DNA of 64,000 nt from contig CP075495.1 in NCBI GenBank assembly GCA_021613535.1, positions 4,650,001-4,714,000 on the forward strand, read 5' to 3'. A program made the translations under genes and the position numbers. This DNA is from Adineta vaga (Eukaryota; Animalia; Rotifera). Positions within the stretch are counted from its first letter, which is position 1. Each line of letters opens with the position of its first letter. This document shows, one piece after another, positions 2,868-56,272 of the stretch. The notes under the pieces were generated by a model, which was given only the letters and a program-made list of their open reading frames with translations, had not been told where the DNA came from and did not search any database.

Positions 2868-5135
2868 TTACATGTTGAAAGAACCTTGTAATTTAATATC
2901 GTTTTTATTAGCAGATGTTGAAATCCAAACAGTATATGTACCAGATGCTATGGTCCATTTTTGATTAATAACATTCCAATATGAAATATCTTTTTGTGTT
3001 AATGTCAATGTAATTTGTTTAGATTCACCAGAAGTTAAGTAGACACGTTCGAAACCACGTAATACTTTTGGTGGTTGTGCAGCTTCGTCAGGAAAGGCAA
3101 CATAAAGTTGTGGTACTTCAGATCCTTGACGTTTGCCAGTATTGGTTATTGTAAATGTAATTTCATAGACTGGTTCATATAATTTTGTATTACCCATATT
3201 TGAATATGATCGTATTTGATATTGACGATTATCTGATCGGCTAGATTGTTTACCATGAACTATATTGGAGATATCAAGTGCAGAGAATGAAAATGTAGTA
3301 TATGATAATCCATAACCAAAAGGATATCGTGGAACAATATTATATTTATCAAAATGACGATAATCTAAGAAGACACCTTCAGTATAATTAGAATTGTACA
3401 ATTCAGTAATGTTTGTACCAAAATCTGAATCATTTTTTGCTAAAGTAAAAACGAGTTTACCACCAGGATTATAATCTCCAAATAGAACATCAACAATAGC
3501 AGGTCCATATTCTGATCCTGGCAAACCAGACCAGATAACACCGACAACATTGGGATGATCAATCCATGCTTCAATATTTAATTGTGAAACACTATTTACA
3601 ATAACAATAGTGTTTGTACAACGTGAAGCAACTGTTTGAACCAATTTATCACCATCATTAAAAGCATGAAGATTATATCTATCTCGTCCTTCAGTCGACC
3701 AAGCATTAACAAAAACAAGACATTTTGCATTTCCAAATCCACGAACATTAAATGAATTATTAATAGCATTATAATCATTTTGATTAGTAACATATTGAAT
3801 TTGAATATGAGAATCTCGAGCTTTAACTAAGAGTGAAGTAAGAGGATCAATACTATATGTTGGTCGAACATAACCAGAACCACCACCTTGATATAATGCA
3901 CCATTGAATCCTTCATCAGATCCCCATGGACCAAGACCATCATTAAATTGACCTGCAGCTGATCCAAAAACAGAATAATATTTATCTTGACTAACATTAA
4001 ATGGTAACACATTATTTGTATTCTTTAATAAAATAATACCAGCAGTACCCACTTCTCGATTAATTTTATAGTTATCTTCAGTAGCATCACGATCTAAATC
4101 TAATGTTGGATAATCTTGATCTTGTCCAAGTAAAAAATAAGGTGCAAGTACTCGAACAATCATATCATCAATTCTTGCTTCAGTAATTGAACCACTTCTT
4201 ACTGCTTGTATAAGAGAATAACCAAGAAATCCATCACCACCTGGCATTTCAATATCTAAACCTCCTAAAGCTGATGGAACACCAGTTTTTGTTGCTCCCC
4301 AATCAGACATAACATTCCCTTGAAATTCAAGTTCATTTTTCAAAAGTCCATTTAATGTTTTATCATTTTGACATGCTTGTGTACCGTTGACTTGATTATA
4401 TGAACACATAATAGAACCAGCACCAGCAGCAACACTAGCAGCAAATGGCCAAAGATAAATTTCATGAATTGTTTTATCATCAAGATTAGCTGAGTAACCT
4501 TGAGAATTAATATCATCTACTTTGGGAAAATCAGCGACAAGACCATAAAAACGATTTGTTTCTTGTTCATTACAAATATAATGTTTAGCAGTAGCTACAA
4601 CACCTTGATCTTGAAGACCTTGAACATAATAGAATGAATTTTCACCAGAAAGATAAGGATCAGAACCAAATCCTTCCCAATTACGACCATGAAGCGCATT
4701 ACGATCAATATTCATCATTGGACCCAGAGCAAAATGAACACCTTTACCTCGAAATTCTTTACCAATTGCTACAGCACGTCGATAAAAAAGATCTCGATCC
4801 CAAGTTGCAGCTATTTGTATACCAGGCGCAAACGCCGTCGAAAACTGTACACCATCACCGACACCCGATGGTGAATCTTGAAAACACATTCCATGAAAAT
4901 TTAATCGTGGTACAGGAAAAACAGTTCCAGCACATGGACCTGGTACACCTGCAGTCATATTACATTTCTCTTCTAATGTCATTTGTGCAACAAATGCTTT
5001 AGCTAAAGCAATGGCTTCATTCCATGTTCTGCTTTCAAATTTCTGATTCTTTTGAATATTAGATTGAATCACTGCAGAATAAGTGACTACAAGACACACA
5101 CTAATGATAATCACAGAAAACCAATTACCGACCAT
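2868..5135 (-). CDS. Secreted GH3 beta-glucosidase, fungal Cel3A/BGL1 type, intronless
   Basis: Signal peptide from MVGNWFSVIIISVCLVV (ATG 5135; the ORF track starts at an upstream GTG). Motifs MTLEEK, GRNWEGFGSDPYL, AKHYICNEQE, MCSYNQVNG, nucleophile MSDW, likely acid/base Glu in WSTEG, YPFGYGLSYTTF, FnIII tail EVPQLY/LRGFERV. Confidence 0.95.
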   Translation of the reverse strand: MVGNWFSVIIISVCLVVTYSAVIQSNIQKNQKFESRTWNEAIALAKAFVAQMTLEEKCNMTAGVPGPCAGTVFPVPRLNFHGMCFQDSPSGVGDGVQFSTAFAPGIQIAATWDRDLFYRRAVAIGKEFRGKGVHFALGPMMNIDRNALHGRNWEGFGSDPYLSGENSFYYVQGLQDQGVVATAKHYICNEQETNRFYGLVADFPKVDDINSQGYSANLDDKTIHEIYLWPFAASVAAGAGSIMCSYNQVNGTQACQNDKTLNGLLKNELEFQGNVMSDWGATKTGVPSALGGLDIEMPGGDGFLGYSLIQAVRSGSITEARIDDMIVRVLAPYFLLGQDQDYPTLDLDRDATEDNYKINREVGTAGIILLKNTNNVLPFNVSQDKYYSVFGSAAGQFNDGLGPWGSDEGFNGALYQGGGSGYVRPTYSIDPLTSLLVKARDSHIQIQYVTNQNDYNAINNSFNVRGFGNAKCLVFVNAWSTEGRDRYNLHAFNDGDKLVQTVASRCTNTIVIVNSVSQLNIEAWIDHPNVVGVIWSGLPGSEYGPAIVDVLFGDYNPGGKLVFTLAKNDSDFGTNITELYNSNYTEGVFLDYRHFDKYNIVPRYPFGYGLSYTTFSFSALDISNIVHGKQSSRSDNRQYQIRSYSNMGNTKLYEPVYEITFTITNTGKRQGSEVPQLYVAFPDEAAQPPKVLRGFERVYLTSGESKQITLTLTQKDISYWNVINQKWTIASGTYTVWISTSANKNDIKLQGSFNM

Positions 5136-5659
5136 TGTTAAACGAATATCCACTACCCTTGGGTTTTTCGAATATATTTAGTTATATATAATATGAGAAA
5201 AGAAAATGAATGCAAGATATTTTATCTTTTATCAACATTATTCAAGCACAGTTACACATACCACCCTAGGTTTATTCTTTAGTTGTTTCTTTACAAGTAA
5301 TATCATTTGATATCAATGATATCCATACTGATAAAAGGGTGTGTCAATAAATATTGTTAGTTTTTCATATAAACACATAAAGATAAGTTTAAAAAATATT
5401 CGCCTTTACCGAATACATGATTTTTTTAGGTTCAGAAAAGGTTTTAATTTAATACTTAGACAACGAGAATGACAACATATACGATTTTACTTAACCAACG
5501 ATTTGAAATACAGATTTGACAAAAGTTTCGTTTTTATTCAAGAATATAATGAATTTGATAATAAAAAAATGCACAGAATCATCGATTCAATGATTAAAGT
5601 GTACTCATAATAAAGAATTTATACTAAGAAATCAGAAACGAATTAATACAAGTAATTGA

Positions 5660-6388
5660 CTAAACTTCGTCAGATAATGATGATGTCATATAATCATCGA
5701 TATGGTCAAGAAGTGCGTTTACTTCATTAAATTCTTTCTTCAACGGTGTATTTTCCATTTCGCTATAACGTTGATATAATATATGACTCCACGTTAATCG
5801 ATGTTTAACGTCTGCACTATTTAAAGGAACTTTGTCTAGTAGACGTTTACTTTCAACGAGAAAATTATCTGCTATATCACGTACCATACGTGATAATAGA
5901 TCTGCATCGAAATTAAATATCTGTATATAGTCTCTAAAGGAAAGTGCCCATTCCATTTGCATTTCAATATTATGACAGAAGACATATATGGATGTGTATG
6001 GGTTTTTGGAAATCGGATCTGTAAATGTTTTGAGAAATCTTTTGAGAACTTTCGGTACAGCTTCCTCTCCCAGGGAGCCCGAAACAATAAAGAAGATTCG
6101 TCGGTGTTGATTTCGTTCGAAACAATCAATACAACGTTCAACATCTTTGAATGCTGCTAAGAGAAACCAAATACCTTCAAAATGAATCGGTAAAGGACCT
6201 TCTGCACGAAGAATATTATCAAAATCTTTATCAATTAATGCTAACGGAGTTTCATTTTTTGGATCAGCTGTTGTCGAAAATGCTTTCTTCAGATGCTGAT
6301 ATCGATTGGGATTTCCAATTCCTTTATCTAACCATATAAGCATATGAGTTGGATCTTCATCATTGGGAATTGTAGCATCATGGGGCAT
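5660..6388 (-). CDS. Stand-alone receiver-like (pseudo-REC) domain plus helical tail, paralog 1
   Basis: ATG at 6388 (MPHDATIP), 6 nt after a TTTCAG acceptor; motifs LIWLD, RIFFIVSGSLG, SIYVFC, LLSRMVRDIA shared with the two neighbouring genes. Confidence 0.8.
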   Translation of the reverse strand: MPHDATIPNDEDPTHMLIWLDKGIGNPNRYQHLKKAFSTTADPKNETPLALIDKDFDNILRAEGPLPIHFEGIWFLLAAFKDVERCIDCFERNQHRRIFFIVSGSLGEEAVPKVLKRFLKTFTDPISKNPYTSIYVFCHNIEMQMEWALSFRDYIQIFNFDADLLSRMVRDIADNFLVESKRLLDKVPLNSADVKHRLTWSHILYQRYSEMENTPLKKEFNEVNALLDHIDDYMTSSLSDEV

Positions 6389-6460
6389 TTTTATCTGAAA
6401 TAAGTCTTGTATATTATATTTATAAATAGTAAGCAAAAGAAAAATTATTAATTCTTTTTA

Positions 6461-7180
6461 TTATTCAGAAGAAACCGCATGATTATTTCCATAATCACTC
6501 GACTGTTTGATTTGTTTTTCAGTAAATTCAATGCGATCGATTACATAGCTTATTCGATCATACATTTTTGTCCCAGTGTAATTATTAGCTCGTTCGAGAA
6601 GTAATTTTGCCCAATTAAAATAATAAATTGCTGAATATGCTAATGTGTTATCTAAACCTAATTCAGTATTTCCTTGCGTGATGAAATATTCAGCAACATC
6701 TCGCATTAATCGAACTAGCAAATCACTAGGAAAATCAATCATAATACAACTAATTCCTTTCTCTAAACAATCGAAAGACCATTCTACATGTGCCTGGCCA
6801 TGACAACAAAATACGTAAATTGTTTCCAAAGATGAATATTTGTTAATAATATCTGAGACAATTTCTTTTCCCATGGTACCTGACGTAATAAAGAAGATTT
6901 TCTTCTTTTCTTTTATCATTGTGTCGATATAGTTCAGACATTCGTTTGATTCATGAAATGCTTTCAAATTATCTGGTATACTTTGAAATGAGTCTTGAAC
7001 ATCAGTATAGACTTGTGTTAACCTTTCAATCATATCACGTTCTGGAGATACTGGGAATTTACTGTATGGATCTATCTGCCCACCAACACTGCATTTTAAT
7101 CGCATGTTTGATCCCATCAATCCAATATATTTGTCAAGCCAAACGATTACATAATTTGGTTTTGGTATTGGAGTAGCCAT
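6461..7180 (-). CDS. Stand-alone receiver-like (pseudo-REC) domain plus helical tail, paralog 2
   Basis: 239-aa ORF; motifs IVWLDKYIG, KIFFITSGTMG, TIYVFC, LLVRLMRDVA. Confidence 0.82.
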   Translation of the reverse strand: MATPIPKPNYVIVWLDKYIGLMGSNMRLKCSVGGQIDPYSKFPVSPERDMIERLTQVYTDVQDSFQSIPDNLKAFHESNECLNYIDTMIKEKKKIFFITSGTMGKEIVSDIINKYSSLETIYVFCCHGQAHVEWSFDCLEKGISCIMIDFPSDLLVRLMRDVAEYFITQGNTELGLDNTLAYSAIYYFNWAKLLLERANNYTGTKMYDRISYVIDRIEFTEKQIKQSSDYGNNHAVSSE

Positions 7181-7563
7181 TATTTATAAAATTTCGCTAA
7201 TCTAAAATCGACATATGCGCGTAGAAATTTTATTTTATCGAGCACTTCCATTTTTTTTCCTGAAGGAAAATCAAGTAGAAGACGTCGATAAATAAAATCG
7301 ATGAGAATCATTAGTAAGACTTTGAGTACTTGTTTAATACGTTACATTATCTCAAATAACGGCGACTTTTTTTTCGACAAGCGTAGTTGACAGTTGTGAT
7401 ATGCATAGAAGCATTGGGGAAAAAACCAACAGGAAGAAAAGAAAGAAAAAAAGCAAATGTTTTTCTCTCTCTCTTTTTCAAATATTGAGTCGCTTGAATA
7501 CTTATGCAACGATTTATTTCGAAATAATTGTACTAAATTACAGATAACAATAAAGTATTATAA

Positions 7564-8277
7564 TCATTGTTCACCAGATTCTTGTTGCGATATTTGTTCA
7601 TCATGTTCATGATCTTTTGTCGTTTCTGGATATTGTTGTTGATTAAACATGTTTTTCGCTATTTGTATAAGTCCAATATTACCTTCATAATTATCCAAAA
7701 TTCTTAATTGCGAATAAACTGGATCATTCAACGTATCGACTGCATTTGCTGTGATATTCAATATTCGAGCATTTTCAAAGCATTTCAGTGCATCGTTTGG
7801 ACACTTTAAATTTAAATAATCTTTTCCTTGTGTAATAATATCCTTGGATATATTACGTGTGAGCCGTACAAGTAAATCAATTTCATTATCGAACATTGAT
7901 AAGCATGATAGATAGTCAGCGGCGAATTCAGCATGTTTCTCGATAAGAGCACAAAAAATATAAAATGAATGAACTTGAGGATATTCAACCTTAATTTGTG
8001 GAATAATTTGTTGACCAAGTAAACCCGATGATATGAAAATTATCTTTTTCTTGTTTTCCCTCTCAATAAGTTCGATCGCTCCATCACATGTATCAGCAAA
8101 TAAAAATGGGGCAGCATTTTCATTTAAAGCACAAATAAGTGAATCAATTTGATCAGGTGGCATGACAGTTGTTGACTCCAATGCAGTACGAAACATTCGT
8201 TTGAATTGATGACATTCTCCTTCTTGACCAATATATTGATCTAGCCAAATGAAACGAATACCATTTGCTAGAGCCAT
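7564..8277 (-). CDS. Stand-alone receiver-like (pseudo-REC) domain plus TPR-like helix, paralog 3
   Basis: 237-aa ORF; motifs FIWLDQYIG, KIIFISSGLLG, SFYIFC, LLVRLTRNIS, then ALKCFENARIL; TATATAA about 65 nt upstream. Confidence 0.82.
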   Translation of the reverse strand: MALANGIRFIWLDQYIGQEGECHQFKRMFRTALESTTVMPPDQIDSLICALNENAAPFLFADTCDGAIELIERENKKKIIFISSGLLGQQIIPQIKVEYPQVHSFYIFCALIEKHAEFAADYLSCLSMFDNEIDLLVRLTRNISKDIITQGKDYLNLKCPNDALKCFENARILNITANAVDTLNDPVYSQLRILDNYEGNIGLIQIAKNMFNQQQYPETTKDHEHDEQISQQESGEQ

Positions 8278-9001: not shown

Positions 9002-10679
9002 TTATACTCGAACACAACCAGTTTTGTCTGTTAAAGCAGTAGGGCATGATACTTGCTTGAATCGTGCTGAGGGATTATTCGCATTCATGAACCAATCGAA
9101 TCGCCAATAACAACCACGTCGAAGAACAATTGGTAAATTACTACAATTTGCTCGATTAGTTAAACCTCCAAATTGATTACCCCATAAATAAGATCCTCCG
9201 AACTGTTGTGAACATCCGTTACTCGAATAACCCCATCCACTACCAGGTATTTGTAGAATAAACGTATTATCAGTCGTACTAGCTGAATTGATTACTTGTA
9301 CAATGAATTCTTTACCGACCACTGGACCGGATGTGAACAATAATGAATAACATGCACAACACCAGTTCCATTCTGATTGTCCCTAAAATAATACAAATAT
9401 TTATATATTACATATAATTCAATCATAACTTACACTAATAGAACCACCAGCATAACCGTACGAAAGATCACTGCTAACATTCCATGGTTGTTGATCAGTA
9501 CACATGTACGAACTACCACCATTGCAGTATGATTGAGTATTACTATCGATTGTTGTATTACCGTCTTGTGTACATGTTCTTGCTGGATTTGTGACCGAAG
9601 CCTTATATGGCCAACCACAACTTAGTTTACAACAATCCCAATAGGTACTTGTAGATGTATTTTGACGACTGTCATTGAAATAGGTTGTTGTTATCGGCGA
9701 TTCAGTAGTTGTCAGAACAGTCGTCACTGTTGATGACAATAAACATTGTGAATATGAACTATTTTTATAAACACAAGATAAACCGCTACAGCAATTCGTC
9801 GTACCATTCCATCCATTACCTCCACATTGATTGTATATATTATTACAAGTTGCTAAATGTATGAAAAAAATGAATTAGATGAGAAATAGATCAGCTGTTT
9901 TTCTGAGCATATTCTTTAAAAATCTATCAAATTCTTCATGAATTCATCGCATATAACTGTTACATATACGAATATTATAATTTTTCAAAATCACAACATT
10001 TATTTTCAAGTATTTAATGGAAAGTAGATGCAAAAATTAAAAATCATGTAAAACCACTCTTATAAAAATAGAAGATAACAACAGAGTTGAACACCTTTTT
10101 CATGTCTTATATGAACTAAGATATGTTGGAATACATATTTTTGAAGAAGAAATTAAAATCTAGAACATTTTTAAGTTCACCTAAGGGATACTAATAATGA
10201 ACTTAGTATCACCTTCTTCAAATGAATCATTTCGAGTCTGGTATGAAACATAAAGTTTAACTCTTACTATTCCTATACAATTTTCATATGAATTCACTTA
10301 TATCTATATATTAAATCGAAGACTTCAAATTCGTTCGAATCATTGTAAAAGAGAAGTAATTTTTACCTATCGTAGTTGCTGATGTTTGAATGAAGATAAG
10401 TTTTGCATTAGGATCGATTCGAATATTTGATCGTGAAACATAGTTTGAAAATAATAAGCAAGTATAATTGTATTCATAACAGGCTATTGCTTCATGAGAC
10501 GAAGAATGATTTGAGAAAAATGCACGACATATACATTCTGAACATGTAACATTATATAATATAGCATTTGAAGAATCAGCAGAAACATATGTCGCTGACT
10601 CAAAATAAGTTAAATGTGTTGAATAATGTATATTAAAAACGATTTGAAATATAAATAATATGAAAATTCGTCGATTCAT
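9002..10679 (-). CDS. Secreted chimera: Cys-rich PAN/apple-like domain, CBM1, Thr linker and GH45 endoglucanase-like domain (probably inactive)
   Basis: Exon 1 10679-10367 (signal peptide [20 protein letters not shown]...[12 protein letters not shown]). Phase-1 intron 10366-9853. Exon 2 encodes CBM1 ([36 protein letters not shown]), a linker and [11 protein letters not shown]. Exon 3 encodes [27 protein letters not shown]. Confidence 0.85.
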
Positions 10680-16207: not shown

Positions 16208-18148
16208 TTTCTTCGTTGTTACTAAAACATCATCCTCTATTCATTTGAAATAGATTTCAATTTCAATTTTAAAACAATCATTTAAGAAAGAAAATTCTTT
16301 GCATCTAGAATTGATTATCTTCTAATTAAAAACTATTTTTGAAAAGATTTCTCGATAAACTGACATCTATCGACACTTTTTACTATTTGTTAAGAATCGT
16401 GGAACCATTGATCAACATACGTAACATACATACATAGAAATAAATAAAAATAAGCAAGAAAAAAAAAGAAATCAACAAGCATTCTGACGTGGATCATATT
16501 AGTTGGTTTTTATTCGAATATTAAGCAGAAAGATCATTATCAAACTTATATTTAATGATGGTGATTATAATGAAAACATAACAACTTATATTTTTGATGA
16601 TAAATCGACAAAAACAACAGTTCCACGTTCAATAGTGACGATATTTAGAAGAATTTGATTATATCAAATATTACATACACAATTTATTCATTTCATATCC
16701 AAAATTAGTGCCCAAAACCATTGTATATTGTATTAGAACTTAGGATACCGTTTGTTTGGTTATATCTTCGATCAGTTGCATGTTAAGGAATTGTAGTGCA
16801 ATGAAAGAATTTCTTACATTCAGCATACCATCTTCAGGAGTAGTTGAGTAATTTAAATTTTTTGAGAACAAATGAAAATATTAAAGCAGTTTGAAATATT
16901 TGTTCTTTTTGTAGAAAAACATGAGTAGTTTGGATTTTTTGCTGGAGAATTAAATGAATTCTTCAGAGATATGTTATCGAATATCCAATATGATCGCCCA
17001 AAGTATATGAGAATCATTTCTGTTATGTTAAAGAAAAATTTTCAATTGAAATTCTTCTTGTTTTTCACTTCAAAGTGTTAAAAACATTTGAAATAGATTT
17101 CGTTTTTTAAATCCTAACTAACACCCTCATCTATAGGAGTTAATCTATCATCAAATAATGTGTGTTCGATAATGCATTGGTCGGTATAAAAACAATGAAA
17201 ATGCATATTTCAACCTCATCGCTTGTTATATAATCCGTACACTAGATTGAGTATACAGTATTGATGGAGTGTTATGCATTTTTTTTATTGAAGTATTCCC
17301 TTTCTCTTCGGATTCAATCTAGTCGATATCTCTTGAGAAATTCATCGAAGTAGAAAAAGAACAACTCTTAAACTTCTACTTAAATATTTTTTTTGTGTTC
17401 ATTAACGTAAAACAATCGATTTCCTGTCATGACTTTTTTTTTTGTACTGACTCTTCGTTAGTCAAATTGTAAAGGATACATGAACTAATCATCGATAAGT
17501 AAAGAAAAACAACTCTAGAGACAATAGAAGTGTTTAAAAATTGATCAGTACTACATACAGACGAAGATTAACCTGGTTTGTATCGTTTGAAAAGTGAGGA
17601 GGAAGAAGTATGAGTAAATGAATAAGAAAGAGAGAGGAAGGGCAAATGCGTGACAATCTCTCGATTAGTTTTATTGTTGTCTATTCTTTCTTTCCCAATC
17701 GATTACTAGTTGTAAAAAGAAGGCAAGAGAACATGATCATGTTTATTTTATTTTTTAACATGAACATGTTAAGAAGTAAGAAGAAGAATGAATAATGAAA
17801 TTTGAGAACAATCGACACAGCTGTACTGCTTGTGTAGTCTATTTTATTCAGTGATAAAGGCATATTTCGATTATTCTTTTATTTTTATTCGTGTAAGTAT
17901 GTGTGGTAACAGACTGTTGGCAGGTCGTTTAACATACGTATATATATATATATTTCTTGATCTTAAATAACAAAATATCATCGAAACAATCCTCCTTTAT
18001 ATATTTTAGTCTTTTTCTATCATCGAGTTATTTAAAATCGATTATTTTTCTTTTCTTTCTTCTTTCAGAATATAATCTCATGCTCGATATTTCGCGAGAA
18101 CATATCGACAGGTAATGTCGACAAACTATAACAGTGAAAATTTCAAAC

Positions 18149-20655
18149 ATGAATATCCATATTCGTCGTTATTTATTTCGTTTTATTCTTTTTATACCTG
18201 TTATTTGGCTTTTAATTATTCTTATACTTTTGCAATCGAATGAAATTTCTACAAAATCATCTGATAATACTAAATTGAACCGACAGAAAAATTTTAATCA
18301 TCGAATAGGACGTGATGCTGATGAAGCTGATGCATTCGGTGGTAATGCATTAGAACAATTACGTGATCATTTCGTACCAATAGAGAATAAATCTAATCAT
18401 GATGGATCACCGAGTGACGCAGTTCATGTTATACATGAAAAACCACAACAAGTAGCAGCACCACAATTAGAAAATCCGAAACAAGATCTAAATGGACCTG
18501 GAGAAATGGGTAAACCATTTGATGTTAATAAAGATAAATTAACACCAGATGAACGTAAAAAATATGATGATGGTTTTCAAAAAAATGCTTTTAATGGATA
18601 TGTTAGTGATTTAATATCTATACATCGTAGTTTACCTGATGTACGTGATCCTGGTTGTAGAAAAATAAAATATGAACATTTACAAGCACAAGCAAGTGTA
18701 GTCATGTGTTTTCATAATGAAGCATGGTCGGTATTATTAAGATCTGTACATTCAATTCTTGATCGAACTCCTCCAAATTTATTAAAAGAAATTATACTTG
18801 TCGATGATTTTTCTGATATGGGTAAGTTTTTGAATTTCACATGAAAGAAAGAGAACAGAATAGGAATGTTTTCTATTGAATAGAACATTTACAAAAGCCA
18901 CTTGATGATTATCTTAAACCTCTTGGAAAAGTATTTGTTGTGCGACAACCTAAACGTGAAGGTCTTATTCGATCACGTTTAGCTGGTGCTGCTACAGTGA
19001 AAGGTGATGTGATTGTTTTTCTCGATTCACATATCGAAGCAACAGAAGGTTGGCTTGAACCTTTAATTGATCCAATTGCAGCCAATCGTACCACAGTTGT
19101 AACACCTGTTATTGATGTTATTGATGATACAACATTTAAATATAATTATGGTGCTGTAAGTTCTTTAAGTGTTGGTGGATTTGATTGGAATTTACAATTT
19201 AATTGGCATGGCATACCAGAACGTGAACGAAAACGAAGAAAACATGAGCTTGAACCTGTTCGAACGCCAACTATGGCTGGAGGACTTTTTGCGATGAGTA
19301 AACTTTATTTTGAAGAACTTGGTACATGTAAGTTTCAATGAATATTATCGAACAGAAAAGAAATATACATTTAATTTCAGATGATGCTGGAATGGATATT
19401 TGGGGTGGTGAAAATCTCGAAATGTCTTTTCGAATATGGATGTGTGGTGGTAAGAATGTTTTTTTTTGTTTCGTTCAATCGTTTATTTTCATAATTCTTG
19501 AATAGGTACATTGGTGACTGCACCTTGTTCACATGTTGGTCATATATTTCGAAAACGTTCTCCATATAAATGGTTACCAGGCGTTAATGTTGTGAAGAAA
19601 AATGCTGTTCGTGTAGCTGAAGTTTGGCTCGATGAGTATAAAGTATAGAAACATATCAAAATTTCATACGTTCTTAACATCAAGATATTTTTCTTTACTT
19701 TGTTTAGAAATATTATTATGAAAGATTCAATTATGACTTGGTAAGGGAAAAATTCATTTCTACATATGTGATTGAGTTTCTTCTATAGGGAGATTATGGT
19801 GATGTGTCTTCGCGAAAATTACTACGACAAAAATTACAATGTAAATCATTTAAATGGTTTCTTACGGAAATTTATCCAGAACAATTCATTCCTGGTGATG
19901 CTGTAGCTTCAGGCGAGGTTTGTAGAATGAAAGAATATAAATAAGTATTTTTTAAAATGAAAAAATTTTTAGATACGAAGTGTAGGAGCTGCTTTTTGTG
20001 TTGATGGAAGTACGGATCATAAAAATTATCATAAACCAGTTATCGGTTATCCTTGTCATTCGCAAGGTGGTAATCAAGTATGTTATGATCACCAAAAATT
20101 ATAGATAAGTATGAAATAATGATATTGATTTATTTATTTTTTAGTTTTTTATGCTAAGTAAATTGGGAGAAATTCGTCGAGATGATGGCTGTTTAGATTT
20201 CTCTGGTGGTATTAATGATGCAAATAAAGATGACAAAATTATAGTATATCCATGTCATGGAATGAAAGGAAATCAACATTGGGTTTATAATGAGGTTTGT
20301 TTTATACTGAAACTATCAGCATAGAATTCAAAATAGAGAGAAGATAAGAAGAATTATATGTTGATGAGAATATTTTTTTTGTTCATCGAAAGTGCGAATG
20401 ATCTTAACTTGTTATAAATCATTCTATTCCATATCAGTAAACTTCTAAGAGATTCACTGTGATAATTTCTATAGAAAAAAATACATGTATTTCTTCTTGT
20501 AGAATAATCAAGTACATCATCCAGTATCAAATCTATGCATGACATTATCTGAAGATAGTAAACACATTCGAATGAGTCAATGTGATGCAAATAATCTACG
20601 CCACAAATGGTCATGGAAGCGTAAACCACTGAACGAAACAAAGAAAGCTGAATGA
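18149..20655 (+). CDS. GALNT: Polypeptide N-acetylgalactosaminyltransferase (GT27 plus ricin lectin domain)
   Basis: Type II TM anchor; [41 protein letters not shown] (DxH), [32 protein letters not shown]; ricin repeats CHSQGGNQ and CHGMKGNQ. Confidence 0.95.
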
Positions 20656-24917: not shown

Positions 24918-27139
24918 ATGACGAGATATTCTCTTCCAGATAAAATGTTCATTTCAACTTTACAATATACACATACGAGAAATCTCTTTCTTATATCTAT
25001 GAGTATTGTATATACATTTGCATTTGCATCATTATATTGGCAACAAGCTGGCTTATATTCTGATAATGGAGTTTTACCATTACGTTTACAAATTCAACAA
25101 CAAGAAAAAGTTAAACCATTTATTGTTAAATTAGCAACACTGTTTCATTGGACACCTTATCGTATTATGGAATGTATATTATTAATTTCAATTCTCTTAA
25201 GTTCATCAATGATTCTTTTCAAATGTCTACGTACAAGTGTAACATTTGCAATTCTTTGGTTAGCCTATTACAGTTGTTTTCAAATTGCTGGTCAATTTTT
25301 ATATTTTCAATGGGATACATTATTATTAGAAGCTGGTTTCTTAACTATTCTTGTTGCTCCAATGAGAATTTTATATTTGAAACGTAAACAAGTAGAAGAT
25401 TTTCTCTATCAAGATCGAATAACTTTATGGTTAATTCGATGGTTAGCTTTTCGTCTTTTATTTGCTAGTGGTATTGTTAAATTAACAGGCGGAGATAAAA
25501 CATGGTGGGCATTAACGGCAACAACATTTCATTATCAGTCACAATGTATTCCAACACCATTAGCATATTATGCTCATCATACACCTATTTGGTTACATAA
25601 ATTATCGACAGCATTAGTTTATATGTTTATGTCAGGTACTGGTATTTTGTTCTTTTCACCATTTCGTCTGCATCGTATAATTGCTTTTATAATACAATCA
25701 AGCTTACAAATCTTAATAGCATTAACAGGCAATTATAATTTCTTTAATTTCTTAACTATCATCGTATGTTTTGGTTTAATTGATGATCGATTTTTGGGTT
25801 ATTCACAATGGGAATCAGTTGATGGTGATGAACATAAACGAAAAAGATCTTTTTCATGGATTATAACTTTATTTCGACGATTAATTCATTTATTTATTCT
25901 TATTACATATATTTATCTAACTATTCGTTGGTTTGGTATTCATTTGGATAAGAAACGACAGATTATTATAACAAATATTACATTTACTCGTGCACAATTT
26001 GATCTTTTCTTAAAAAGATTTTTACCTGTTTGTCTTTTTCTTGCTTGGTGTTCATTAGTTTTTACTATTGGACGATCAGTTTTCATTTCAATTCGACGTC
26101 CAACAAAAATTTATGCAAAAATATTTCATGCATTAGTTACCATCACATATGGCATTCTAGCAATGAGTTTATTCTTTGTTTCAATGGTTCCATTTACTGT
26201 TATTGAACGGCAAACAAGCAAAGCTTTACCATATGAACTACAATCATGGTATAATAAATTTCAAGATTATCATGTTTTTAATGCTTATGGACTATTCAGA
26301 AGCATGTAAGTCTGGAAAACGTCGGTGTACCTGAAAATATGAGATTAAAAATAATATTATTTTAGGACGGGTGTGGATGGTCGACCAGAATTAATCATTG
26401 AAGGTGCTATAAGTACTAAAAAGTAAGACGATTTGTAGTTACATTTTGTTACCAATATATTTTTATATTTTTCAGTCCCAAATGGAAAGAATATGAGTTT
26501 TTCTATAAACCAGGTTCATTATCTACAGCACCTCCATTCGTTGCTCCACATCAACCTCGATTGGACTGGTAGATATAAAATTTTCCTCAAATATTTTCAA
26601 TCACTTCATTATATATACATCTCTGTATATTTAGGCAAATGTGGTTTGCTGCTTTAAGTCATTATCAACATGAACCATGGTTAGCATTTTTTCTCTATCG
26701 TCTTCTAACAAATCAACGAGAAGTTTTACGATTAATTCAAATGAATCCATTTCCTACAACACCTCCTAAACAAATACGTGTTCTTCTGTATCGCTATAAT
26801 TTCACAACACCACCATCAAAAGATTATTGGCAACGTGAATTAATTAATCAGGAATGGTTTCCAACAATAACTCTCGAAAGTCAATGGTTTATGTCTTATA
26901 TTGAACAACTTAATGTTACACAAATTGATAAACCATTATCAAACAGTATTGTCTTAGATATCATACGCTCAATAAGTGATTTAATGAATGGAACTATCTT
27001 TACATGGTTTCCTGTTGTTATTGCTTTAGTATTTCTTGTTTTACGAAAACTTCTCTGTACAAAACCTCATAAACCAATTGTAATGAAAAGAGATAATGAA
27101 TGGTATCAACCTTTATCATCGAAAGATAAAGATAATTAA
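24918..27139 (+). CDS. LMF2: Lipase maturation factor 2
   Basis: [97 protein letters not shown]. Confidence 0.93.
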
Positions 27140-27763
27140 TTCTTAAAGAATTATACTCTAGTCCTATAGAAGTCAAAATGTTTTCTTTTTCTGCTTGCTC
27201 ATTACTATAATCGTCATTGTTGTGACTTGTTATTGTATTATTTACTAAAATCAATAAATAAAAAAAAATGCATGTGTATGTGATTATTAAGAAACATCGA
27301 TTTTATCATTATTATGCACTCATAAAAGTTCTAGTATGAAACTCATTGACTGATTGTAATTAATGATAATTTGAATTGTATAGAAAAATGCAAGAACGGA
27401 AAGACAAATGATTTCCATATAAAAAATCTTCATAAATCGATTTGTATTTATATTTAGTATGTTATTAATAATGTTCAACGCTAACGAAATTCTGTTGAAA
27501 ATCGTGAAAGATAGATGATATGAAAAAGTTGCACTATCATCTATTTTTGTTTTTATAGTATGTTTTTCTTTACTTTATTTTTTATCTATACGTCATTACA
27601 TGAGCGTTCTAATATTCTACTTTTTATCAAACAGGTTATTTTTATGACTGAGATGATAACAGTTAATATTTTGGTATTTTCTTTTTCTAATCTTATCATG
27701 CTTACTTGAAATTTAACGAAAACTCTCTCTTTGTATTTTCATTCATTTGAGTCTTACTTCCTG

Positions 27764-28908
27764 ATGTTTTTTGCACTTATTCTAGTAAGTTCTCTATGTA
27801 TTTCAACAGTAAATGGCTGGGGTGCCACTGGTCATTCTCTTGTCGCTAAGATAGCACAGAATACATTAACTAGTGATGCAAAAAAATTTGTTCAAGATCA
27901 TTTACCATGGTATACCAATGGTGATTTAAGTATGTTATCTTCGTGGCCTGATACAATATTGTATCCAGATACAAATCCAGTAGATTATCTCAATTGGCAA
28001 TGGTCAAAAGAACTGCATTATGTTAATACACCAGATTGGGTTTGTAATTATGATCGTAATCGTGATTGTGATTGGACTGGAGGACAACGTTGTGTTGATG
28101 GAAGTATTCAAAATTATACACAACGATTAGCAGATACATCATTGGATTGGACACAACGACAAGAAGCATTGCGATTTCTAGTACATATTATTGGTGATGT
28201 TCATCAGCCTCTTCATGCAGGTTTTGCCAGTGATCGAGGTGGCAATTCAATTAAAGGTAAAAAACAAACGTCTATCATGATAAACGTTTCAAAACGCTAC
28301 TCGTTTTTATTTTAGGTCAATTTTTTGGTAAAGCAACTAATTTACATTCACTATGGGATACAGTAATGATTGAACGTCGCATTTCGACTGATTTTCAAAG
28401 TGATTCAAATAAATATTACACTTATCTGCTTAATGTTATGCATACGACCTATATAAGAAATATATCTCAATGGACAAAATGTCCATCGAGTGACGAATCG
28501 AAATACTTAGCTTGTTCAACAGCCTGGATTGATGAAGATACTGATTTGAATTGTGAACATGTATATCGTAATGAACAAGATCAACCATTTAGTATTTCAC
28601 AACAATTTCAATTAGGTCAAACGTATTATAATACTCGAATGGTCTTTCTCGAAGCACGACTTCTTCAAGGTGGTGTTCGACTTGGCGCTGTTATTAATAA
28701 AATTGTCGAACTACAAAAACATAATCATCATTCAATAGACGACGATCAATTATGTTCAGGAACAATGATGTTAATGAGCATTATTTTTTTGCAAGTTTTA
28801 TTGGCATTCTTCGCTTTTATATATTATCTTTCTCGACGAAGAAATTCTCGACTACCATTAGCTGCAACACCAGGTAAATTTCATAGTTTGAATGATATTA
28901 AAGCATAA
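27764..28908 (+). CDS. S1/P1 nuclease with signal peptide and C-terminal TM anchor (2 exons)
   Basis: Mature N-terminus WGATGH, WPD, LHYVNTP, FLVHIIGDVHQPLH, DRGGN, NLHSLWD, GGVRLGAVIN; TM helix MMLMSIIFLQVLLAFFAFIYYL followed by RRR; intron about 28257-28315. Confidence 0.92.
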
Positions 28909-44976: not shown

Positions 44977-47205
44977 ATGTCGACTGGAGGATCAGTTGTT
45001 AAAGTACATTGTTTACCATTTCGAGAATATTTTTCCGTCGATAATATTAAATCAACTCTGCGTGGTTTTGTTTATGAATATGAAACACCAAAAATTGTTA
45101 CGATTCATTCTATTTCAAGTAAGTTTTTAAAGAAAGTTCGTTGGTTTCATTTATTTCTCTCTTCTCTAGTCGCATTAATGTGTCGATTAATTCAATTACT
45201 TATTTTAATCTATGGAATTGCATATTTAATGATCCATAAGAAAGGTTATCAAGAAACTGATACATCAATTATTTCATCGATTACATTGAAAGTTAAAGTA
45301 AACGAAGAATAACATATTCATCAAAATCAATATCTCTGTATTTTTCTCTTTTACTCACTCACTAGGGTATTGGTTATAATCAAACAAGTGACAATCATAC
45401 ATTAGTTATTGATGGTGCCGGTAAGTAGAGAACAAGAAAAGTTAACTTAATCATTTTGATTTGGTTTGATTACAGATTATATTGTACCACCACAAGAAAA
45501 TAATGCTCTATTTTTAATGACAAATTTTATTCGAACTGATCAAGAACATAAACGATGTGCTGGTAAAAATTGATGAAGATTTCAAAATCAATTTATTGAA
45601 AATCTTTCTTTGATTTTTGTTTTGTAGAATCTGCTTTTGAAAATGATAAGAAAACGGCATGTACAACTGATACTGATTGTCGAAAGAATGAAAATTTTCA
45701 ACAAGTAAATTTTGTTTTGTTTTCATTTTTAGTTTTAATTCGATTGTTTTTATTTAGGCTAATGGCAAATGGACTGGTAAATATAAATGATAGATCTAAG
45801 CATTAAATGAGAATTATTTCGCTTTTATAAATAGGTCGTTGTTTAACGAGGAGAAATTCGAGTATTGTTGGTAGATGTGAATTAGAAGGTTGGTGTCCTG
45901 TGGAAAATGATGTCAATATACCAAATCCAATTCGTGATGCGTTAAATTTTACAATATTTGTCAAGAATTTTATTGAATTTCCACGTTTTAAAGTTATTCG
46001 AAAGAATATTCAATTTGATGCTGAATATTTGAAAAAATGTAAATACGATCCAGATAATCATAAAATATGTCCTATACTTCGTGTTGGAACATTACTTGAT
46101 ATTGTTGAACAAAATCCCGAAGAACAAATGCGAATGTTAAAATTAGGTGGTGTTATACGTGTTAAAATCGATTGGAATTGTAATTTAGATAAACCATTAA
46201 ATTTATGTTTACCTGAATATTCATTCAAACGATTAGATGCAACGTTTAATGAATCGAAATTTTCCTATGGATTTAATTTTCGGTATGAAATTATTTTCAT
46301 TGAATAAAAGACAAAGAAAATTTTTCATCGATATCTCTTTAGATTTGCATCACATTGGAAATATCAAAATCGATCATATCGAACATTAACAAAAGCGTAT
46401 GGTCTTCGTTTTATTATATCTGTAAGTTATGAATCTAGGAGAATAAACAATGCATATGTTGTCTTTTGTCATGTAGGTTAGTGGTCATGCTGGTAAATTT
46501 GATCTGATAACACTAACATTGAATATCGGTTCTTTAATTGGTATTCTTGGTTTAGCAACATTTATCTGTGACATTGTTGCCTTATATGTACATCGACAAT
46601 CGGATGTATATCGTCAACAAAAATTTCAAGATGTCGATTTAAATCTTTTACAATTAGAAACATTAAATAATCTTCCATTGAATATGATGAGTGATGATGC
46701 GAAAGAAAAACATGCGAATCATGTTGAACAAGCCATATTAACCGGACATATTATTGACAAAAACGAATCTTTATCCCATATAGAAAGTCCATATAAAGAA
46801 AAATTTCGACGAAATAGCTTAACCAATCAAGATGTTTATGATGATATATCATCAACATCGAAAAGTACCAATCAACAATCAACACCCATGTTAATCTATG
46901 GTACTTATCATCAACAAAAAGTTGGTTTAACAAATTCAATTACTGATAGTCCATTATCATTATCATCCGTTAAACAACGACGTACTCTGACGAATCGACC
47001 ATCACAATTACGATTTTTTTCAAATGATAAAACTCAATTGTATGATAAAACAAATATTGTTTATGTTGATGATGATACACCAGATATCAATGATAGAAAT
47101 GAAACAAATCAATTAGCTGAAGAGAGAAATCATTTAAATACTAATATATCACCAAATCGTGAATATACAAATCGAATATCACCTAAAATTGAAACTTATT
47201 TATAA
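44977..47205 (+). CDS. P2RX: P2X purinoceptor (ATP-gated cation channel), multi-exon
   Basis: YEYETPKIV, TM1, KGYQE, LKVKG, DYIVPPQENNALFLMTN, CELEGWCPVE, NFTIFVKNFIEFP, CPILRVG, WNCNLD, GFNFRFA, RTLTKAYGLRF, GKFD, TM2 IGSLIGILGLATFICD, YRQQK. ATP-binding Lys/Asn/Arg positions are intact. Confidence 0.93.
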
Positions 47206-47909: not shown

Positions 47910-48515
47910 TTAATTTCTTTTGTCGTTAATTTTCGGATAGGATATACCAAGTCGATTACTTAACATATGTACGGTTTTTTCATATTCTCGATTGAGATTA
48001 TTTGCTTGTTGTAATGCATATTTTAAATCTTCAATTTCTTCGAAAAAATTTCCATCAAGTGCACTGACTTCTTTTTTCATACGTTCATATCGTTCTTCAA
48101 ATTTTTCCATACGTTTTTGAGCGGAAAGTGCGCGTTTGTCGGCTTGTTCTTTTTCTTTTTCACATTGAATTAAACGGCGTTCATATTCATTGATACGATT
48201 TGATGGAGGTGAATTTCGTTGTTCATGAATCGTTTCATTTTCATATTTTTTCAATAAATCATTTTGAGCTTTTAAAAGACGATGTAAACGCATATGTTCG
48301 TCGGATAAATCTTTTCCTACGGAAGGATTTGAACGTGGTTGAGCAATAATATCTGTTTGACATGATATCGAACATGAACGAAGATGATCGTGATCTTTTG
48401 TTGCAATTTGTTTCTCTAAATAATGGATATGTCGTTTTAAATCAGCTATTTTCTTTTTTAATCGTTCATTTTCATGATTTAAAAAAGCACACATGTGAAT
48501 CGGTGGCATATCCAT
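47910..48515 (-). CDS. Small coiled-coil protein with CEP290-like C-terminal motif, intronless
   Basis: Coiled coil ending KKEVSALDGNFFEEIEDLKYALQQ...LSNRLGI, resembling the CEP290 C-terminus (FFEEIEDLKY). First in-frame ATG at 48515. Confidence 0.7.
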   Translation of the reverse strand: MDMPPIHMCAFLNHENERLKKKIADLKRHIHYLEKQIATKDHDHLRSCSISCQTDIIAQPRSNPSVGKDLSDEHMRLHRLLKAQNDLLKKYENETIHEQRNSPPSNRINEYERRLIQCEKEKEQADKRALSAQKRMEKFEERYERMKKEVSALDGNFFEEIEDLKYALQQANNLNREYEKTVHMLSNRLGISYPKINDKRN

Positions 48516-48610
48516 TATCAATGATATTCATATCTGAAGAGAAAAAAAGTTAATAACTAAGTTATTTTATTCCCGTTCCAAGAAATACTACAACTAGAAA
48601 TTTTATTTTA

Positions 48611-48629
48611 ACACACACACACACACACA
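48611..48629 (+). repeat. (AC)n microsatellite
   Basis: About 9 AC units in the C2CD3 3' UTR region. Confidence 0.8.
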
Positions 48630-48793
48630 GTTATCTGAACTTGAAAAAATATAAATATAAAAAACAAAAACTTCTATAAAACAAAGGTATGAATGGGATT
48701 AATTATAGAGAAAAAAAAACACGATTTAGTGATTTTGTATTGTTCTTAATTGATATGTCGGAAGTACATGATCGTTGAATTGATGATGATTAT

Positions 48794-51700
48794 TCAATGA
48801 ATGATTGCCTCAGGAGACATTGTATTATGGTGAGCATTGCCATCATTTGTTGAATAAACTAAGATAAAGATTGTAATAATGAAAAAGAATTGATAAATGA
48901 TATTTACTATTGTATCGTTCGGCATTCATTTGTTGACAATCGAAATCGAATACTGATAGATTGTTTAATGGACGAATATGAACAAGATCAATATGATCAG
49001 GATATGTGGGTGGTAATACTACTGTTGATAAAGGTGCGCTATGATGTGTAATATGATGTTCTATGGATGAAATATGCGAATGATGATCATTATCATCTTC
49101 GTCAGACCATATGATTGAATTACTATTTCTATCAAAAAAAAGAAAAAGAAAAAGAAGTTTTGTCAATGCTTGTATGACAGACTGCGTAAGTGATTGATTT
49201 AAAACCTACTCGATATTTTGAGTAGATCTGTCATTATTCAGTAAATGATCCATCGCTTCAAATTCATGGGTGACGTTAAAGTTTGGTCGTGCAGGTAGCG
49301 GTGATGATGATGAAGACGATGGTGGTGGTGGTGTAGTAGATTTTACAAAAAAATCTTTTGATGTTTCTAATAAATGATTAGCTTTGCTCATTAATTCTTG
49401 TGCCAAACGAACTTGATCATTATGTAATGAAAGAGCATCTGCAACCTGATGTCCATGACTAATCGATGGTCTTTCATGAATTAAATATTGAGGAAATGGT
49501 TGGGATAGATCGCTCTGTGTCATTGTATGATGTGTGTTGTTCGAAGTTACTGTTAGTGGTAGACTGATTTGATGTATCGTTGATGAGACTGTATTATTAC
49601 TTCGACTTGATGTTAATGTTGATGGCACTTCTGAATTTGAATAGAATCGAGCTTTTAATCGTTCCGTAATTACATCAAGTTCTCCAAGTTGTCGCCTAAG
49701 AAGAATAAATCATAGGTTTTGTTTCTTCTTTTTGATTAAAATCGAAAGATTCGTTTTATTTACCGAAGATTATTCATTAAGAAAGATTCTTTATGACTAT
49801 TATCGTCAATTACTGACGAATTTAAACTTATTTGACTTCCAGTATTCTAAATAATAATCAAAGAAGATTAAAAAAAATTCTCAAAGGAACGACTCAAACT
49901 TACAGATCTTGCTGAAAGATCAGTCAGAACTAAAGGTGGTACACTTGTTGAACTTGAACGATGTGAATCAAGTTTTGGTTGATATTGTTTAGAATTATAT
50001 CGTAAACGTTTCAATTCAAAAAGATCTTCTTGTGGTATAATACTAATTTTTAATTGTCCTTGAACATTTCCAATTGCATCACTAATATTATACCAACCCG
50101 ATATTTGTTGTAAGCCAGATAATAATGGACTTAAATCAATTGAAACAAAACCAAGAACTTTATCACCGGATTTTTCTATTTAGATGAGAGACAAGTCGAC
50201 TTAGTTATATTGTTTAAATACTTCTCTTTTCTTACCAGGAATTGATTCGATTTCAACATTGATTTTATGCCAAACTTTAAGAATAAAAACTTTCTTTTCA
50301 TTAAATAAATGTTCAACAGATAATTTAACAGATTGTTGATAATTCCATTGAGGTTTCATTGTTGATGTTAATACTTGTGTACGAAATAAATGATTCGAAT
50401 CAGCTGCTAAATAAGTTACATATGGATTTGGTGGAAGATGAAGATTTCTAATTTAAATTATTGAAATAAAACTATTTCAAAAATATGAGATCAATTTACT
50501 TTTCTTCCGAGTATATATTAGGTAAATGTGCACCTTGTTCAATATTAATTTGAGCTGAAAAGAGATTATTAGTAATTGAACGAAGAGCACGATCATTATT
50601 AATCAAATTTAAATAACGATCTTCTAAATAAGATTCAAGTTCAGCATCATTCGATGTATCGATATTATTTGGATTCTAAAAACACAATTATTTATATATA
50701 TAATCAAATAGGTCTTAATGAATCTTACCCTTAAATCATTGAAATCTTTCGATGTATCAATTGAAACATGAACTTGTACACAAGCTCCATGTAAATCTTT
50801 TGCTCCTTGTTTAAATATTGGTAAAATAGTACTTATTCGTTGAGATTTTCTTGTTCGTTGACATAAAATATTTAAATCTACATAAACTGAACCTATTAAT
50901 TTATCTGTTGTTGATGATTGTGTATAATCATAGGTATCATTTTCACTCATCCAGATTTGAATTTCTAATTTTTCTTCACGTAAATACCAAAAAAATGGTG
51001 CACTAGATAGAAATAGATGTTCTTTGGTAAATTGTAAGTCACATATGAGATTATTTTTATTTATAGTCGCTTTTCTTCGTTTGGTTATGATTGGCACTAA
51101 AAGAAATAATGAAAAAATGAATATTCAAACGATCACATCTATCTATAATACTTTTATCATAGAAACGGTATTGAGAAAAAATACTAATTCGATCTTTGTC
51201 TGATTGATTTGCAAGTTCGATTGGAAATTGAATACGATCAATGGATATTTTAACTAAACAACCAAGATCTTTTTCTTCTAAATTTACAAATATTTTTGAG
51301 AAAATTTATCCTCATTTCAACGAAAAACAATACCATCAAGTACGTTTTCTTGATTTACATATTTTTCATCTAGCCAGCCAAGTGTTTTTGCAGAATCAAT
51401 CATTCGACGACGATCATCTTGTTGAGCAAATCGTATAAATAATTCAATACCACCTACTGAGTGTTCGATAGGATCCGCAGATATTTCTGATCGAATAGCA
51501 CTAGATAAAGGATACCATCCTTTAATTCCTATTCAAAAAAGAAATGAACAATTTTGTTTTTTTATCAGATCATTTCAATGGAAATTACCTGTATGTCGAA
51601 TAATCAAATCTTTTAATGCAATTTGACAATGACTTAGAAGAATATCGGTTGATTGTTTTTCATTTGAATTTATTCGATGATAAATCTCAACTTTTAATTC

Positions 51701-54700: not shown

Positions 54701-56272
54701 CTATGTTTTTTCTTGTCATTTTGATGAACATTTACTCCACCATAAAGTAAATCATCCAATAGACTGTCCTCATTTTCTAAACCATCAAGATCAGTTAAAA
54801 TTGAATTATTAAAATTTGCAGATGATTTCAATGATGCTTTTATTCCTAGCATATCGCAGATGTCTTCATTATCTACCAATATATCGATATCATCAATAGG
54901 TATTTCCAATGATTTGTGCCCATAATTGTCGACCTTATTTTTAATATTGAGTGGATCTATTTTGCCAGATGAATTCGTTTTTTTCGAAGTTGTAGTTTTT
55001 AATGTTGATGATTTAATCATGTTATCTCGAAGACGATTTGCTCGGTCAATTAATTCTTCAACGACTTTACCAGTTGGCAGATCTTTATATGCTTGCACAC
55101 CTAGACATATGTTTTAGTTGTAAAAATGACATAATATTTATTTAGAAATTTTTTACCAGGTGGAGGATTTTTTGAATTGAGTACATGTGCTTGCGATGAT
55201 GTCACTGTTTTACCATGCCGTTGTGGCAGAGTCGTATCACTCGAATAAGTTGAAATCGAATTGTCTGTATTTTGAATTTGTCCAATTGTATATGTTTGTA
55301 AACCATTTTCAAATTGATTAATCTGTAAAGAAAACAAATTTATGTTTACAATAGATTATCTCCTATCTAATATAATGATTTTACCTGATGATGAGGATCA
55401 TTGATTCCAATCGAATTACGTCGTGAACGTGGACTACTAACTTCAGATGTAAAACTCATTGCCATTGGATGTTCACTACTAGCATGAGCTATCATGGAAA
55501 AAGACATTTTTAGTATAGGATCAACAAGTATAGTGAACTTACGTCCAGGTAGAAAAAGTCGTAATGAGACAAATAACTCTCCTAATTTATCACCTTTATT
55601 TGAGAATATAGAGATATAACCTTTGATTGAGTTGTCTATCGATAGTGAAGATAAATTTGATACTTTCACTGTACCAATAACACGATTTGTCTCACCATCG
55701 TGTACTTTAAGTAACAACTCAGCAGCATCTAAATATAAATAACACAGATATATATATTCAATCAAATCCTTCAAAATTGTCGTATAAACCAGTCAGATAT
55801 TTGGAGAATTGATTGAGATCACTTCGAATATAATATTTTACTGTTGTACTAGGTTGTTGTCGATGATCAGGTTTAGTACCTGTTATTTGTGGTCTAGCAA
55901 TAACGAAATAAGAAATTTTCTTACTATAAACTTTCAATGATTTCTATTTACTTGAATGTTGCTGACGCGACATCTTCACCCCACCAGGCCATTTTAATAG
56001 AAGCAGATCGATAGAGTGACTGATATTTTGTACTCCAACGTAATTTTGGTATGTGGCAGATGAGAATAGCATGTACAGAACCTTGGACATGTGGTGGCAA
56101 ATTTGTTTTAGCAGATACATCGTCTTTAATATTTTCTTGTGATTGCAATTGAGTCCGTATTTCTTTATCTATATTAAAAGTAGAGAAATAAAAGACAATT
56201 CAAAAAATAGATTAATATCTTATACGTACTTTTTAATGAACTTGAACTTTTAGCAACCGTTGCACTAGACAT
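48794..56272 (-). CDS. C2CD3: C2 domain-containing protein 3 (centriole elongation factor), many exons
   Basis: Start MSSATVAK (56272); TNLPPHVQG, WWGE, YLTDAAELLLKV, YYIEYQFPVV, VVCWGTLTPKFNFEQ, VWGESDCFIQYSFP, QVGVNTYVKLSFSFL, RSFVPEFNHSIDFP, GIKGWYPL, GLQQISGWYNISD..GNVQGQLKI; stop at 48794. Confidence 0.88.

Follow-up and report, generated by a model that had tools for sequence, protein, structure and literature searches.

The window analysed here, 64,000 nucleotides of Adineta vaga contig CP075495.1 (positions 4,650,001 to 4,714,000, forward strand), carries at its positions 5660-8277 three neighbouring minus-strand open reading frames (ORFs) without coding introns, designated A, B and C, which are real and ancient members of a bdelloid pseudo-receiver family that lack the ADP-ribosyltransferase (ART) borne by their long relatives. 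The family itself, a receiver (REC)-like domain multiplied in an animal, is real and apparently undescribed. Judging from sequence comparison, we put at about an even chance the proposal that such stand-alone modules act as ART-less regulatory partners of the ART-TPR proteins of the same family, with B and C held at a common dosage.

The initial annotation had described A, B and C as adjacent, same-strand genes of about 240 residues without coding introns and with strong divergence, and we can confirm each of these points: aligned end to end, the three proteins are 25-33% identical in pairs, and all of the scaffold motifs it had listed are found in the alignment, which holds WLD, IFFIxSGxxG, YxFC and LLxRxxR(D/N). 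The TPR-like helix that it had noticed is present though weak, with a TPR_2 match in A at E 0.031 and a match of this kind in 5 of 53 family members; by structure comparison, the tail of the modelled proteins resembles MIT, and the invariant residues of the tail differ by orthologue clade. In gene C, the inserts of the REC-like domain are a beta-hairpin and FTDP; a 258-residue ORF started by TTG was rejected for this gene as an over-extension, and 242 residues from the ATG were taken. Neither in A, B and C nor among the 53 family members scanned does any Pfam or NCBIfam family recognise the REC-like domain.

A receiver fold without phosphorelay chemistry

Two independent predicted models yielded a (beta/alpha)5 CheY-like REC fold whose top structural matches are receivers, in keeping with the CheY-type fold proposed in the initial annotation; the fold of gene B was assigned by alignment to A and C. 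Residue positions were taken from the register of the model strands, without residue-level superposition, and counted over 59 family domains. In this register, the Asp following beta1, corresponding to the first residue of the D12/D13 pair of CheY, is kept in 54 of the 59 domains, with the second position being variable, while the phospho-acceptor position (CheY D57, at the end of beta3) is Ser in 54/59. The site preceding the D57-equivalent is never commonly Asp and the one following it is Gly in 43/59 domains; A, B and C have no Asp at the D57-equivalent or at either flanking position. Cys occupies the position of CheY T87 at the end of beta4 in 42/59 domains and Phe that of CheY K109 after beta5 in 45/59, and a register shift of one position yields neither Asp nor Lys in A, B and C. 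The earlier claim of a pseudo-receiver, with Ser for the beta3 Asp, Cys for the beta4 Thr and no Lys, is supported. Asp21, Ser103 and Cys138 are located where strand ends make up the active-site pocket of receivers and are common to the ART-fused copies, which suggests that this pocket still has some role.

An hhalign comparison with a five-sequence CheY/CheB alignment gave a probability below 1% and no significant profile similarity; the link to REC is one of predicted fold only. Among 53 members scanned, none scored over the Pfam cut-off for Response_reg (PF00072), and an exon-wise search of the A. vaga genome, in which 12 of 14 controls were detected, had no match to HisKA (PF00512) or PF00072. 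Phosphorelay is excluded for the REC-like family, which works like a pseudo-receiver, i.e. a REC fold without phospho-Asp, and belongs neither to PF00072 nor to a two-component system. The fold, the Asp after beta1 and the Gly at helix 3 agree with descent from a true receiver; no sequence bridging to true receivers was found in prokaryotic or viral contigs, nor in BFVD. A TIR domain was also considered and rejected, since the 50 best matches of each wide structural search included no TIR chain.

Compared with the CheY-like receivers of PF00072, the bdelloid domain differs in its exchange of Asp for Ser, Thr for Cys and Lys for Phe, in a beta3-alpha3 loop that is four residues shorter, in inserts after helix 1, in an identity of 6-16% with no match to a hidden Markov model, in the kinase not being found in the genome and in its animal host. 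Receiver-like domains are rare in animals, PDE8 being the known case. A closer likeness is to the atypical or pseudo-receivers, comprising plant PRRs, the KaiA N-domain, Helicobacter HP1043-type regulators and conflict-system receivers, which have a REC fold without phosphorylation chemistry, as is known for plant PRRs and KaiA, and presumably act through protein or ligand contact; the atypical regulators 2hqr and RitR are among the tied top structural matches. Unlike these, with which no sequence relationship was found, the bdelloid domain is followed by a TPR/MIT-like tail or an ART-TPR enzyme instead of a DNA-binding or clock domain, and its copies in an animal have risen to hundreds. For prokaryotes, kinase-independent receivers, including nucleotide-responsive ones, have been put forward as the switches of conflict systems (PMC8195603), and animals are reported to be without two-component signalling (PMC8142344).

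Relationship to the ART-TPR proteins

A search of the A. vaga genome (100.8 Mb, six contigs) with the trio profile returned 305 candidates, of which 150 were scored, and the REC-like domain was found at no fewer than 150 genomic loci. About 30 of these are stand-alone module genes, some of them broken; most of the others lie in long frames, and all 8 long ORFs sampled comprise REC-like domain, ART and TPR. The R, STS and ExE motifs of an R-S-E-type ADP-ribosyltransferase are intact in each of 5 ART ORFs inspected, and the genome holds at least 149 ART matches. The relationship can be seen from both sides, with the trio profile matching the long ORFs at E down to 1e-14 and the ART-type profile scoring A, B and C at 45-65 bits, so the similar domain that the initial annotation had placed at the N-terminus of ART/TPR proteins is indeed there. 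Stand-alone and ART-fused copies have W-L-D, S-G-x-x-G, Y-x-F-C, W147 and F158 in common; the trio differs from the ART-TPR proteins in having neither the ART nor the TPR solenoid and in its own helix-5 signature and inserts. In PMC10809525, the ART-TPR proteins are annotated as 'TPR repeat containing protein-like' with PF03496 and PF13424. Neither the N-terminal domain of these proteins nor the stand-alone genes were found described in the literature, most subscription journals lying outside the search.

Natural fusions bear on whether the two classes cooperate. The Didymodactylos protein P0171 is encoded by one uninterrupted 744-codon ORF comprising, in order, a stand-alone-type module, an ART-type REC, the ART and TPR; its module keeps the stand-alone helix-5 signature and tail, and P0149 and P0204 start in the same way. 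Of the sequence evidence for joint action of stand-alone and ART-fused classes, we regard this fusion as the strongest. There are also double-module proteins (P0060, P0061, P0070, P0104, P0111, P0113, P0129, P0135 and L023) in which the second REC-like domain and tail are strongly degenerate, the A. vaga copy L023 being split over two frames. At another A. vaga locus (L056, C5:4903500-4913499, ~4.91 Mb), two 99%-identical stand-alone copies of the C group stand on either side of an ART gene of 492 codons, the N-terminal region of which scores only just as a REC-like domain. Separately, one subfamily (P0051, P0062, P0100, P0134, P0138 and P0173-P0175) has an extra N-terminal domain of ~90 residues before the module, which by eye is ubiquitin-like or PB1-like.

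All named homologues are bdelloid, and contig searches found no prokaryotic or viral relative of the REC-like domain. The ESM Atlas returned rotifer clusters and also two structurally similar ones from beyond the rotifers or of uncertain origin, the first rich in ciliates and bearing an ART, the second with a U-box (TM ~0.5). We treat both as leads only; from these predicted structures, a wider eukaryotic range of the domain is possible.

Age and conservation of the cluster

Each gene of the trio has orthologues in other bdelloids at 46-64% identity, well beyond what chance would give, and gene B alone has 18 full-length orthologues (47-57% identity) in a clade of its own with support of 97/88. 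In the tree, A, B and C fall into separate orthologue groups, those of A and B being well supported and that of C less resolved. The ratio of non-synonymous to synonymous substitution (dN/dS) of the A, B and C orthologues against A. vaga is ~0.18-0.33 at dS >1, and the allelic variants in B and C (12 synonymous, 14 non-synonymous) give a corresponding polymorphism ratio (pN/pS) of 0.30 (p=0.003). A, B and C are under purifying selection.

The arrangement GH45-A-B-C-POC1 is intact in two metagenomic rotifers (L052, L053); the A-B-C order recurs in L064 and L066, and one further locus has B-C-D. On A. vaga chromosome C5, a cluster A-C-D-E, without B, is bounded by homologues of GALNT and POC1, with order and orientation unchanged. 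This arrangement is an ohnologous copy, so the cluster is older than the bdelloid genome duplication. The ancestral cluster comprised at least A-B-C-D, of which the trio is one surviving subset, and among those examined, this locus is the oldest conserved cluster of the family. Two further observations concern the C5 copy: a short REC-ART junction relic (L057:4548-4718, C5 near 12,769,600) lies 800 nt upstream of it, and a gene that by eye is DJ-1/PfpI-type-like (L035:1-633, C5 near 12,775,300) stands between it and POC1, taking the place held by GH3 in the window.

The junction between B and C

Three sequencing runs look like RNA, a type guessed by program, and leave intergenic DNA and GH45 uncovered. 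Contig ends at 5573/5575 and 7203 are common to all three, and the B-C gap of 72 nt is crossed unspliced by one contig, whereas gene A is represented by one shallow contig piece in one run and lies off the B-C contig. Expression, a point raised in the initial annotation, is seen for B and C, which are covered in three RNA-type runs, and only weakly for A. At the upstream end, the contigs of the three runs stop at 7203, the A of the AG in a candidate acceptor preceding B, and the next letter is non-genomic in one run; similar acceptors stand upstream of B orthologues. Since the rotifer spliced leader ends in GAG (PMC3795323), a break at this position would be the expected outcome of trans-splicing. 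Of the 23-nt exon for the rotifer spliced leader, the A. vaga genome has 59 near-exact copies. These copies occur mostly as divergent pairs ~130 nt apart (e.g. L059/L060, C1:2551160-2551336), with clusters around 9.9 and 10.9 Mb of C5.

The layout of AATAAA as a poly(A) signal over the B stop, a U-rich tract and YAG 6-10 nt before the C ATG, within a gap of 32-72 nt, was found in 9/9 loci at which C follows B, these nine loci sharing ancestry and the DNA being AT-rich. Because synonymous sites are near saturation, retention of the junction signals suggests selection. The one solitary B copy (L055) is without this signal. The B-C gap has no GT donor in A. vaga or in L053, and an in-frame fusion intron was rejected because the phase varies and because L053 has an in-frame stop. 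We consider it probable that B and C form an operon resolved by spliced-leader trans-splicing. Such operons have been described in animals (PMC12460157, PMC3795323), and those of nematodes, tunicates, chaetognaths and rotifers resemble B-C in having genes on the same strand, a poly(A) signal followed by an acceptor, and leader genes in the genome, with the B-C gap falling under the 250-bp criterion of PMC12460157. B-C differs from them in joining two divergent paralogues and in a very short poly(A)-to-acceptor distance of ~20-60 nt, and leader addition is a step that we infer here.

Proposed mechanism and alternative readings

We postulate a scheme in three steps: 1) once the TPR solenoid of a long protein has bound its trigger, the ART would be gated by the REC-like domain, acting as a switch of an allosteric or interaction kind; 2) stand-alone modules would bind ART-TPR proteins, or compete with them for the same partner or ligand, making contact via REC-like domain and helical tail and thereby setting the threshold as brake, decoy or helper; 3) B and C would be co-transcribed as an operon and resolved by spliced-leader trans-splicing, an arrangement that would tie the dosage of the two and suit a B/C pair, with A and D as optional neighbours. 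The operon-like junction of B with C and the natural fusions lend indirect support to a B/C partnership or to one of module with effector. Effector-less decoy or brake paralogues are known in innate immunity, e.g. CARD-only and pyrin-only proteins, cFLIP and truncated plant NLRs, and these would be comparable in that the interaction domain of a receptor-effector family occurs as small stand-alone tandem genes, but their fold is unrelated and regulation by the trio is drawn by analogy only.

A defence or stress role of the ART-TPR family is one that we infer from architecture and copy number only. ADP-ribosylation or TPR genes are not mentioned in the text of a study of Rotiferophthora infection (PMC11258130); a desiccation study lists ADP-ribosylation among over-expressed processes, but it is PARPs that are discussed there (PMC10809525). 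It is a tentative extension, which we would sooner doubt than adopt, that bdelloids have an undescribed intracellular defence system in which hundreds of REC-ART-TPR sensor-enzymes, reading a small-molecule or redox signal by way of the Asp/Ser/Cys pocket, are checked or licensed by stand-alone pseudo-receivers, with B and C dosage-locked through a trans-spliced operon.

Several observations weigh against such a regulatory partnership. Stand-alone and ART-type domains have different helix-5 signatures and occupy separate tree branches, so the two may have different partners; the P0171-type fusion was seen in one genus and may be a local accident; and no ART gene adjoins the trio in any genome examined. 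Gene B is dispensable at the locus, as exemplified by A. ricciae, where the arrangement is GH45-A-C-GH3-POC1 without B, and by Rotaria sp. Silwood1, with extra C copies, a decayed A, and B with two in-frame stops, followed by C and D. In addition, contigs of the RNA type cannot prove one dicistronic molecule, nor can they show a leader. The initial annotation saw in the trio ancient copies kept together; other rotifers and the ohnologous chromosome do preserve the order, but B has been lost or broken in two lineages; the trio is real but neither unique nor fixed, there being ~30 stand-alone copies and four member types A-B-C-D plus the ohnologous E.

The conserved pocket could also be read in other ways. 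The modules might be independent small-molecule or redox sensors, in which Asp21/Ser103/Cys138 would bind a nucleotide-type ligand or oxidant and the MIT/TPR-like tail would signal to partners other than ART-TPR proteins; the retention of these residues at the pocket strand ends (54, 54 and 42 of 59 domains, respectively), the MIT resemblance and clade-specific invariant residues of the tail, and the nucleotide-responsive switches proposed in PMC8195603 all favour such a role, which we nonetheless hold to be unlikely. A catalytic use of the same polar residues, gathered as they are in one pocket of a flavodoxin-like domain, would make the modules small enzymes for ADP-ribose removal or nucleotide hydrolysis, perhaps an eraser or immunity factor for ARTs, for which toxin-antidote pairing is common. 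This we find quite improbable, given top structural matches to receivers and not to hydrolases, TIR or macrodomains, the loss of Cys138 in 17/59 domains and the absence of any Pfam or NCBIfam enzyme match.

The strongest form of the initial proposal, an obligate A-B-C hetero-trimer acting as one sensor, can draw on the A-B-C order in A. vaga, L052, L053, L064 and L066. However, C is kept where B is lost or broken (A. ricciae and Rotaria sp. Silwood1), A has decayed at the Rotaria locus, the ohnologous cluster has no B, and A lies outside the B-C transcript with far less coverage; survival of the trio as a subset of A-B-C-D argues in the same direction, and we regard the trimer as very improbable. 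The same decay of A and B in Rotaria, together with the loss of B in A. ricciae, the barely expressed A and several broken genes among ~30 scattered copies, might point to remnants left by birth and death during the ART-TPR expansion, which would have little function and whose clustering would only reflect old tandem duplications. For B and C this is largely refuted by purifying selection (the low dN/dS at dS >1 and the allelic pN/pS), and orthologue clades that are stable and older than the genome duplication, along with conserved junction signals, also speak against it, leaving only a slender chance. As for genuine response regulators from a two-component system gained by horizontal transfer, the REC fold is all that speaks for them, and with no Asp at or beside the end of beta3, no Lys after beta5, and no PF00072 or HisKA match in the genome, we deem them hardly conceivable. 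Regulatory partnership with the ART-TPR proteins is the reading that we prefer.

Features and neighbouring genes

Table 1. Coordinates of the trio, its transcript and signals, and adjacent genes in the window
Feature	Position	Strand	Description
Gene A	7564..8277	-	237 aa; REC-like domain ~residues 7-146 with short insert; helical TPR/MIT-like tail; low expression
Gene B	6461..7180	-	239 aa; REC-like domain, its alpha1-beta2 insert longer; tail helical; upstream member of probable operon
Gene C	5660..6388	-	242 aa from ATG; REC-like domain residues 15-175; three-helix tail ~168-240
Continuous transcribed span (B, junction, C)	5573..7203	-	One contig of 1631 nt (run X1); contigs that overlap (run X2)
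Probable spliced-leader trans-splice site	7202..7208	-	Pyrimidine-rich TTTTAG acceptor, 21 nt upstream of B ATG
B-C junction	6389..6460	-	72 nt; AATAAA over B stop (6462-6457), U-rich tract, YAG (6396-6395) 6 nt before C ATG
GH3 beta-glucosidase	2868..5153	-	Intronless; neighbour outside module; Pfam
GH45 endoglucanase exons	9002..9739	-	Upstream synteny marker outside module; ORFs, YWDCC motif

GH45 occupies the orthologous position in A. ricciae, L052 and L053. GH3 was gained or lost later, since it is present in both Adineta species and absent between C and POC1 in L052 and L053. Both genes look horizontally acquired, and GH3 lies under RNA-type contigs while GH45 does not. In L053, the region upstream of the cluster has two GH45 copies with a caspase-family (Peptidase_C14) gene (1673-2906) between them. 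The remainder of the window (14000-64000) comprises, by eye, ordinary animal genes: GALNT-like (18134-19341), lipase-maturation-factor-like (24918-27139), S1/P1-nuclease-like (27731-28908), P2X-like (44977-47205), a C2-domain ciliary protein (47910-55774) and FG-nucleoporin-like (60685-62160).

Significance

In an animal, a receiver-fold domain for which Pfam has no model has multiplied to at least 150 copies, mostly on toxin-type ADP-ribosyltransferases. Being small, soluble-looking, conserved and expressed, the stand-alone genes give the readiest access to the binding partners of the domain and to the way in which the ARTs are kept safe. The B-C junction is a clean candidate for a conserved rotifer operon, and the family bears on the pathogen resistance of the long-term asexual bdelloids.
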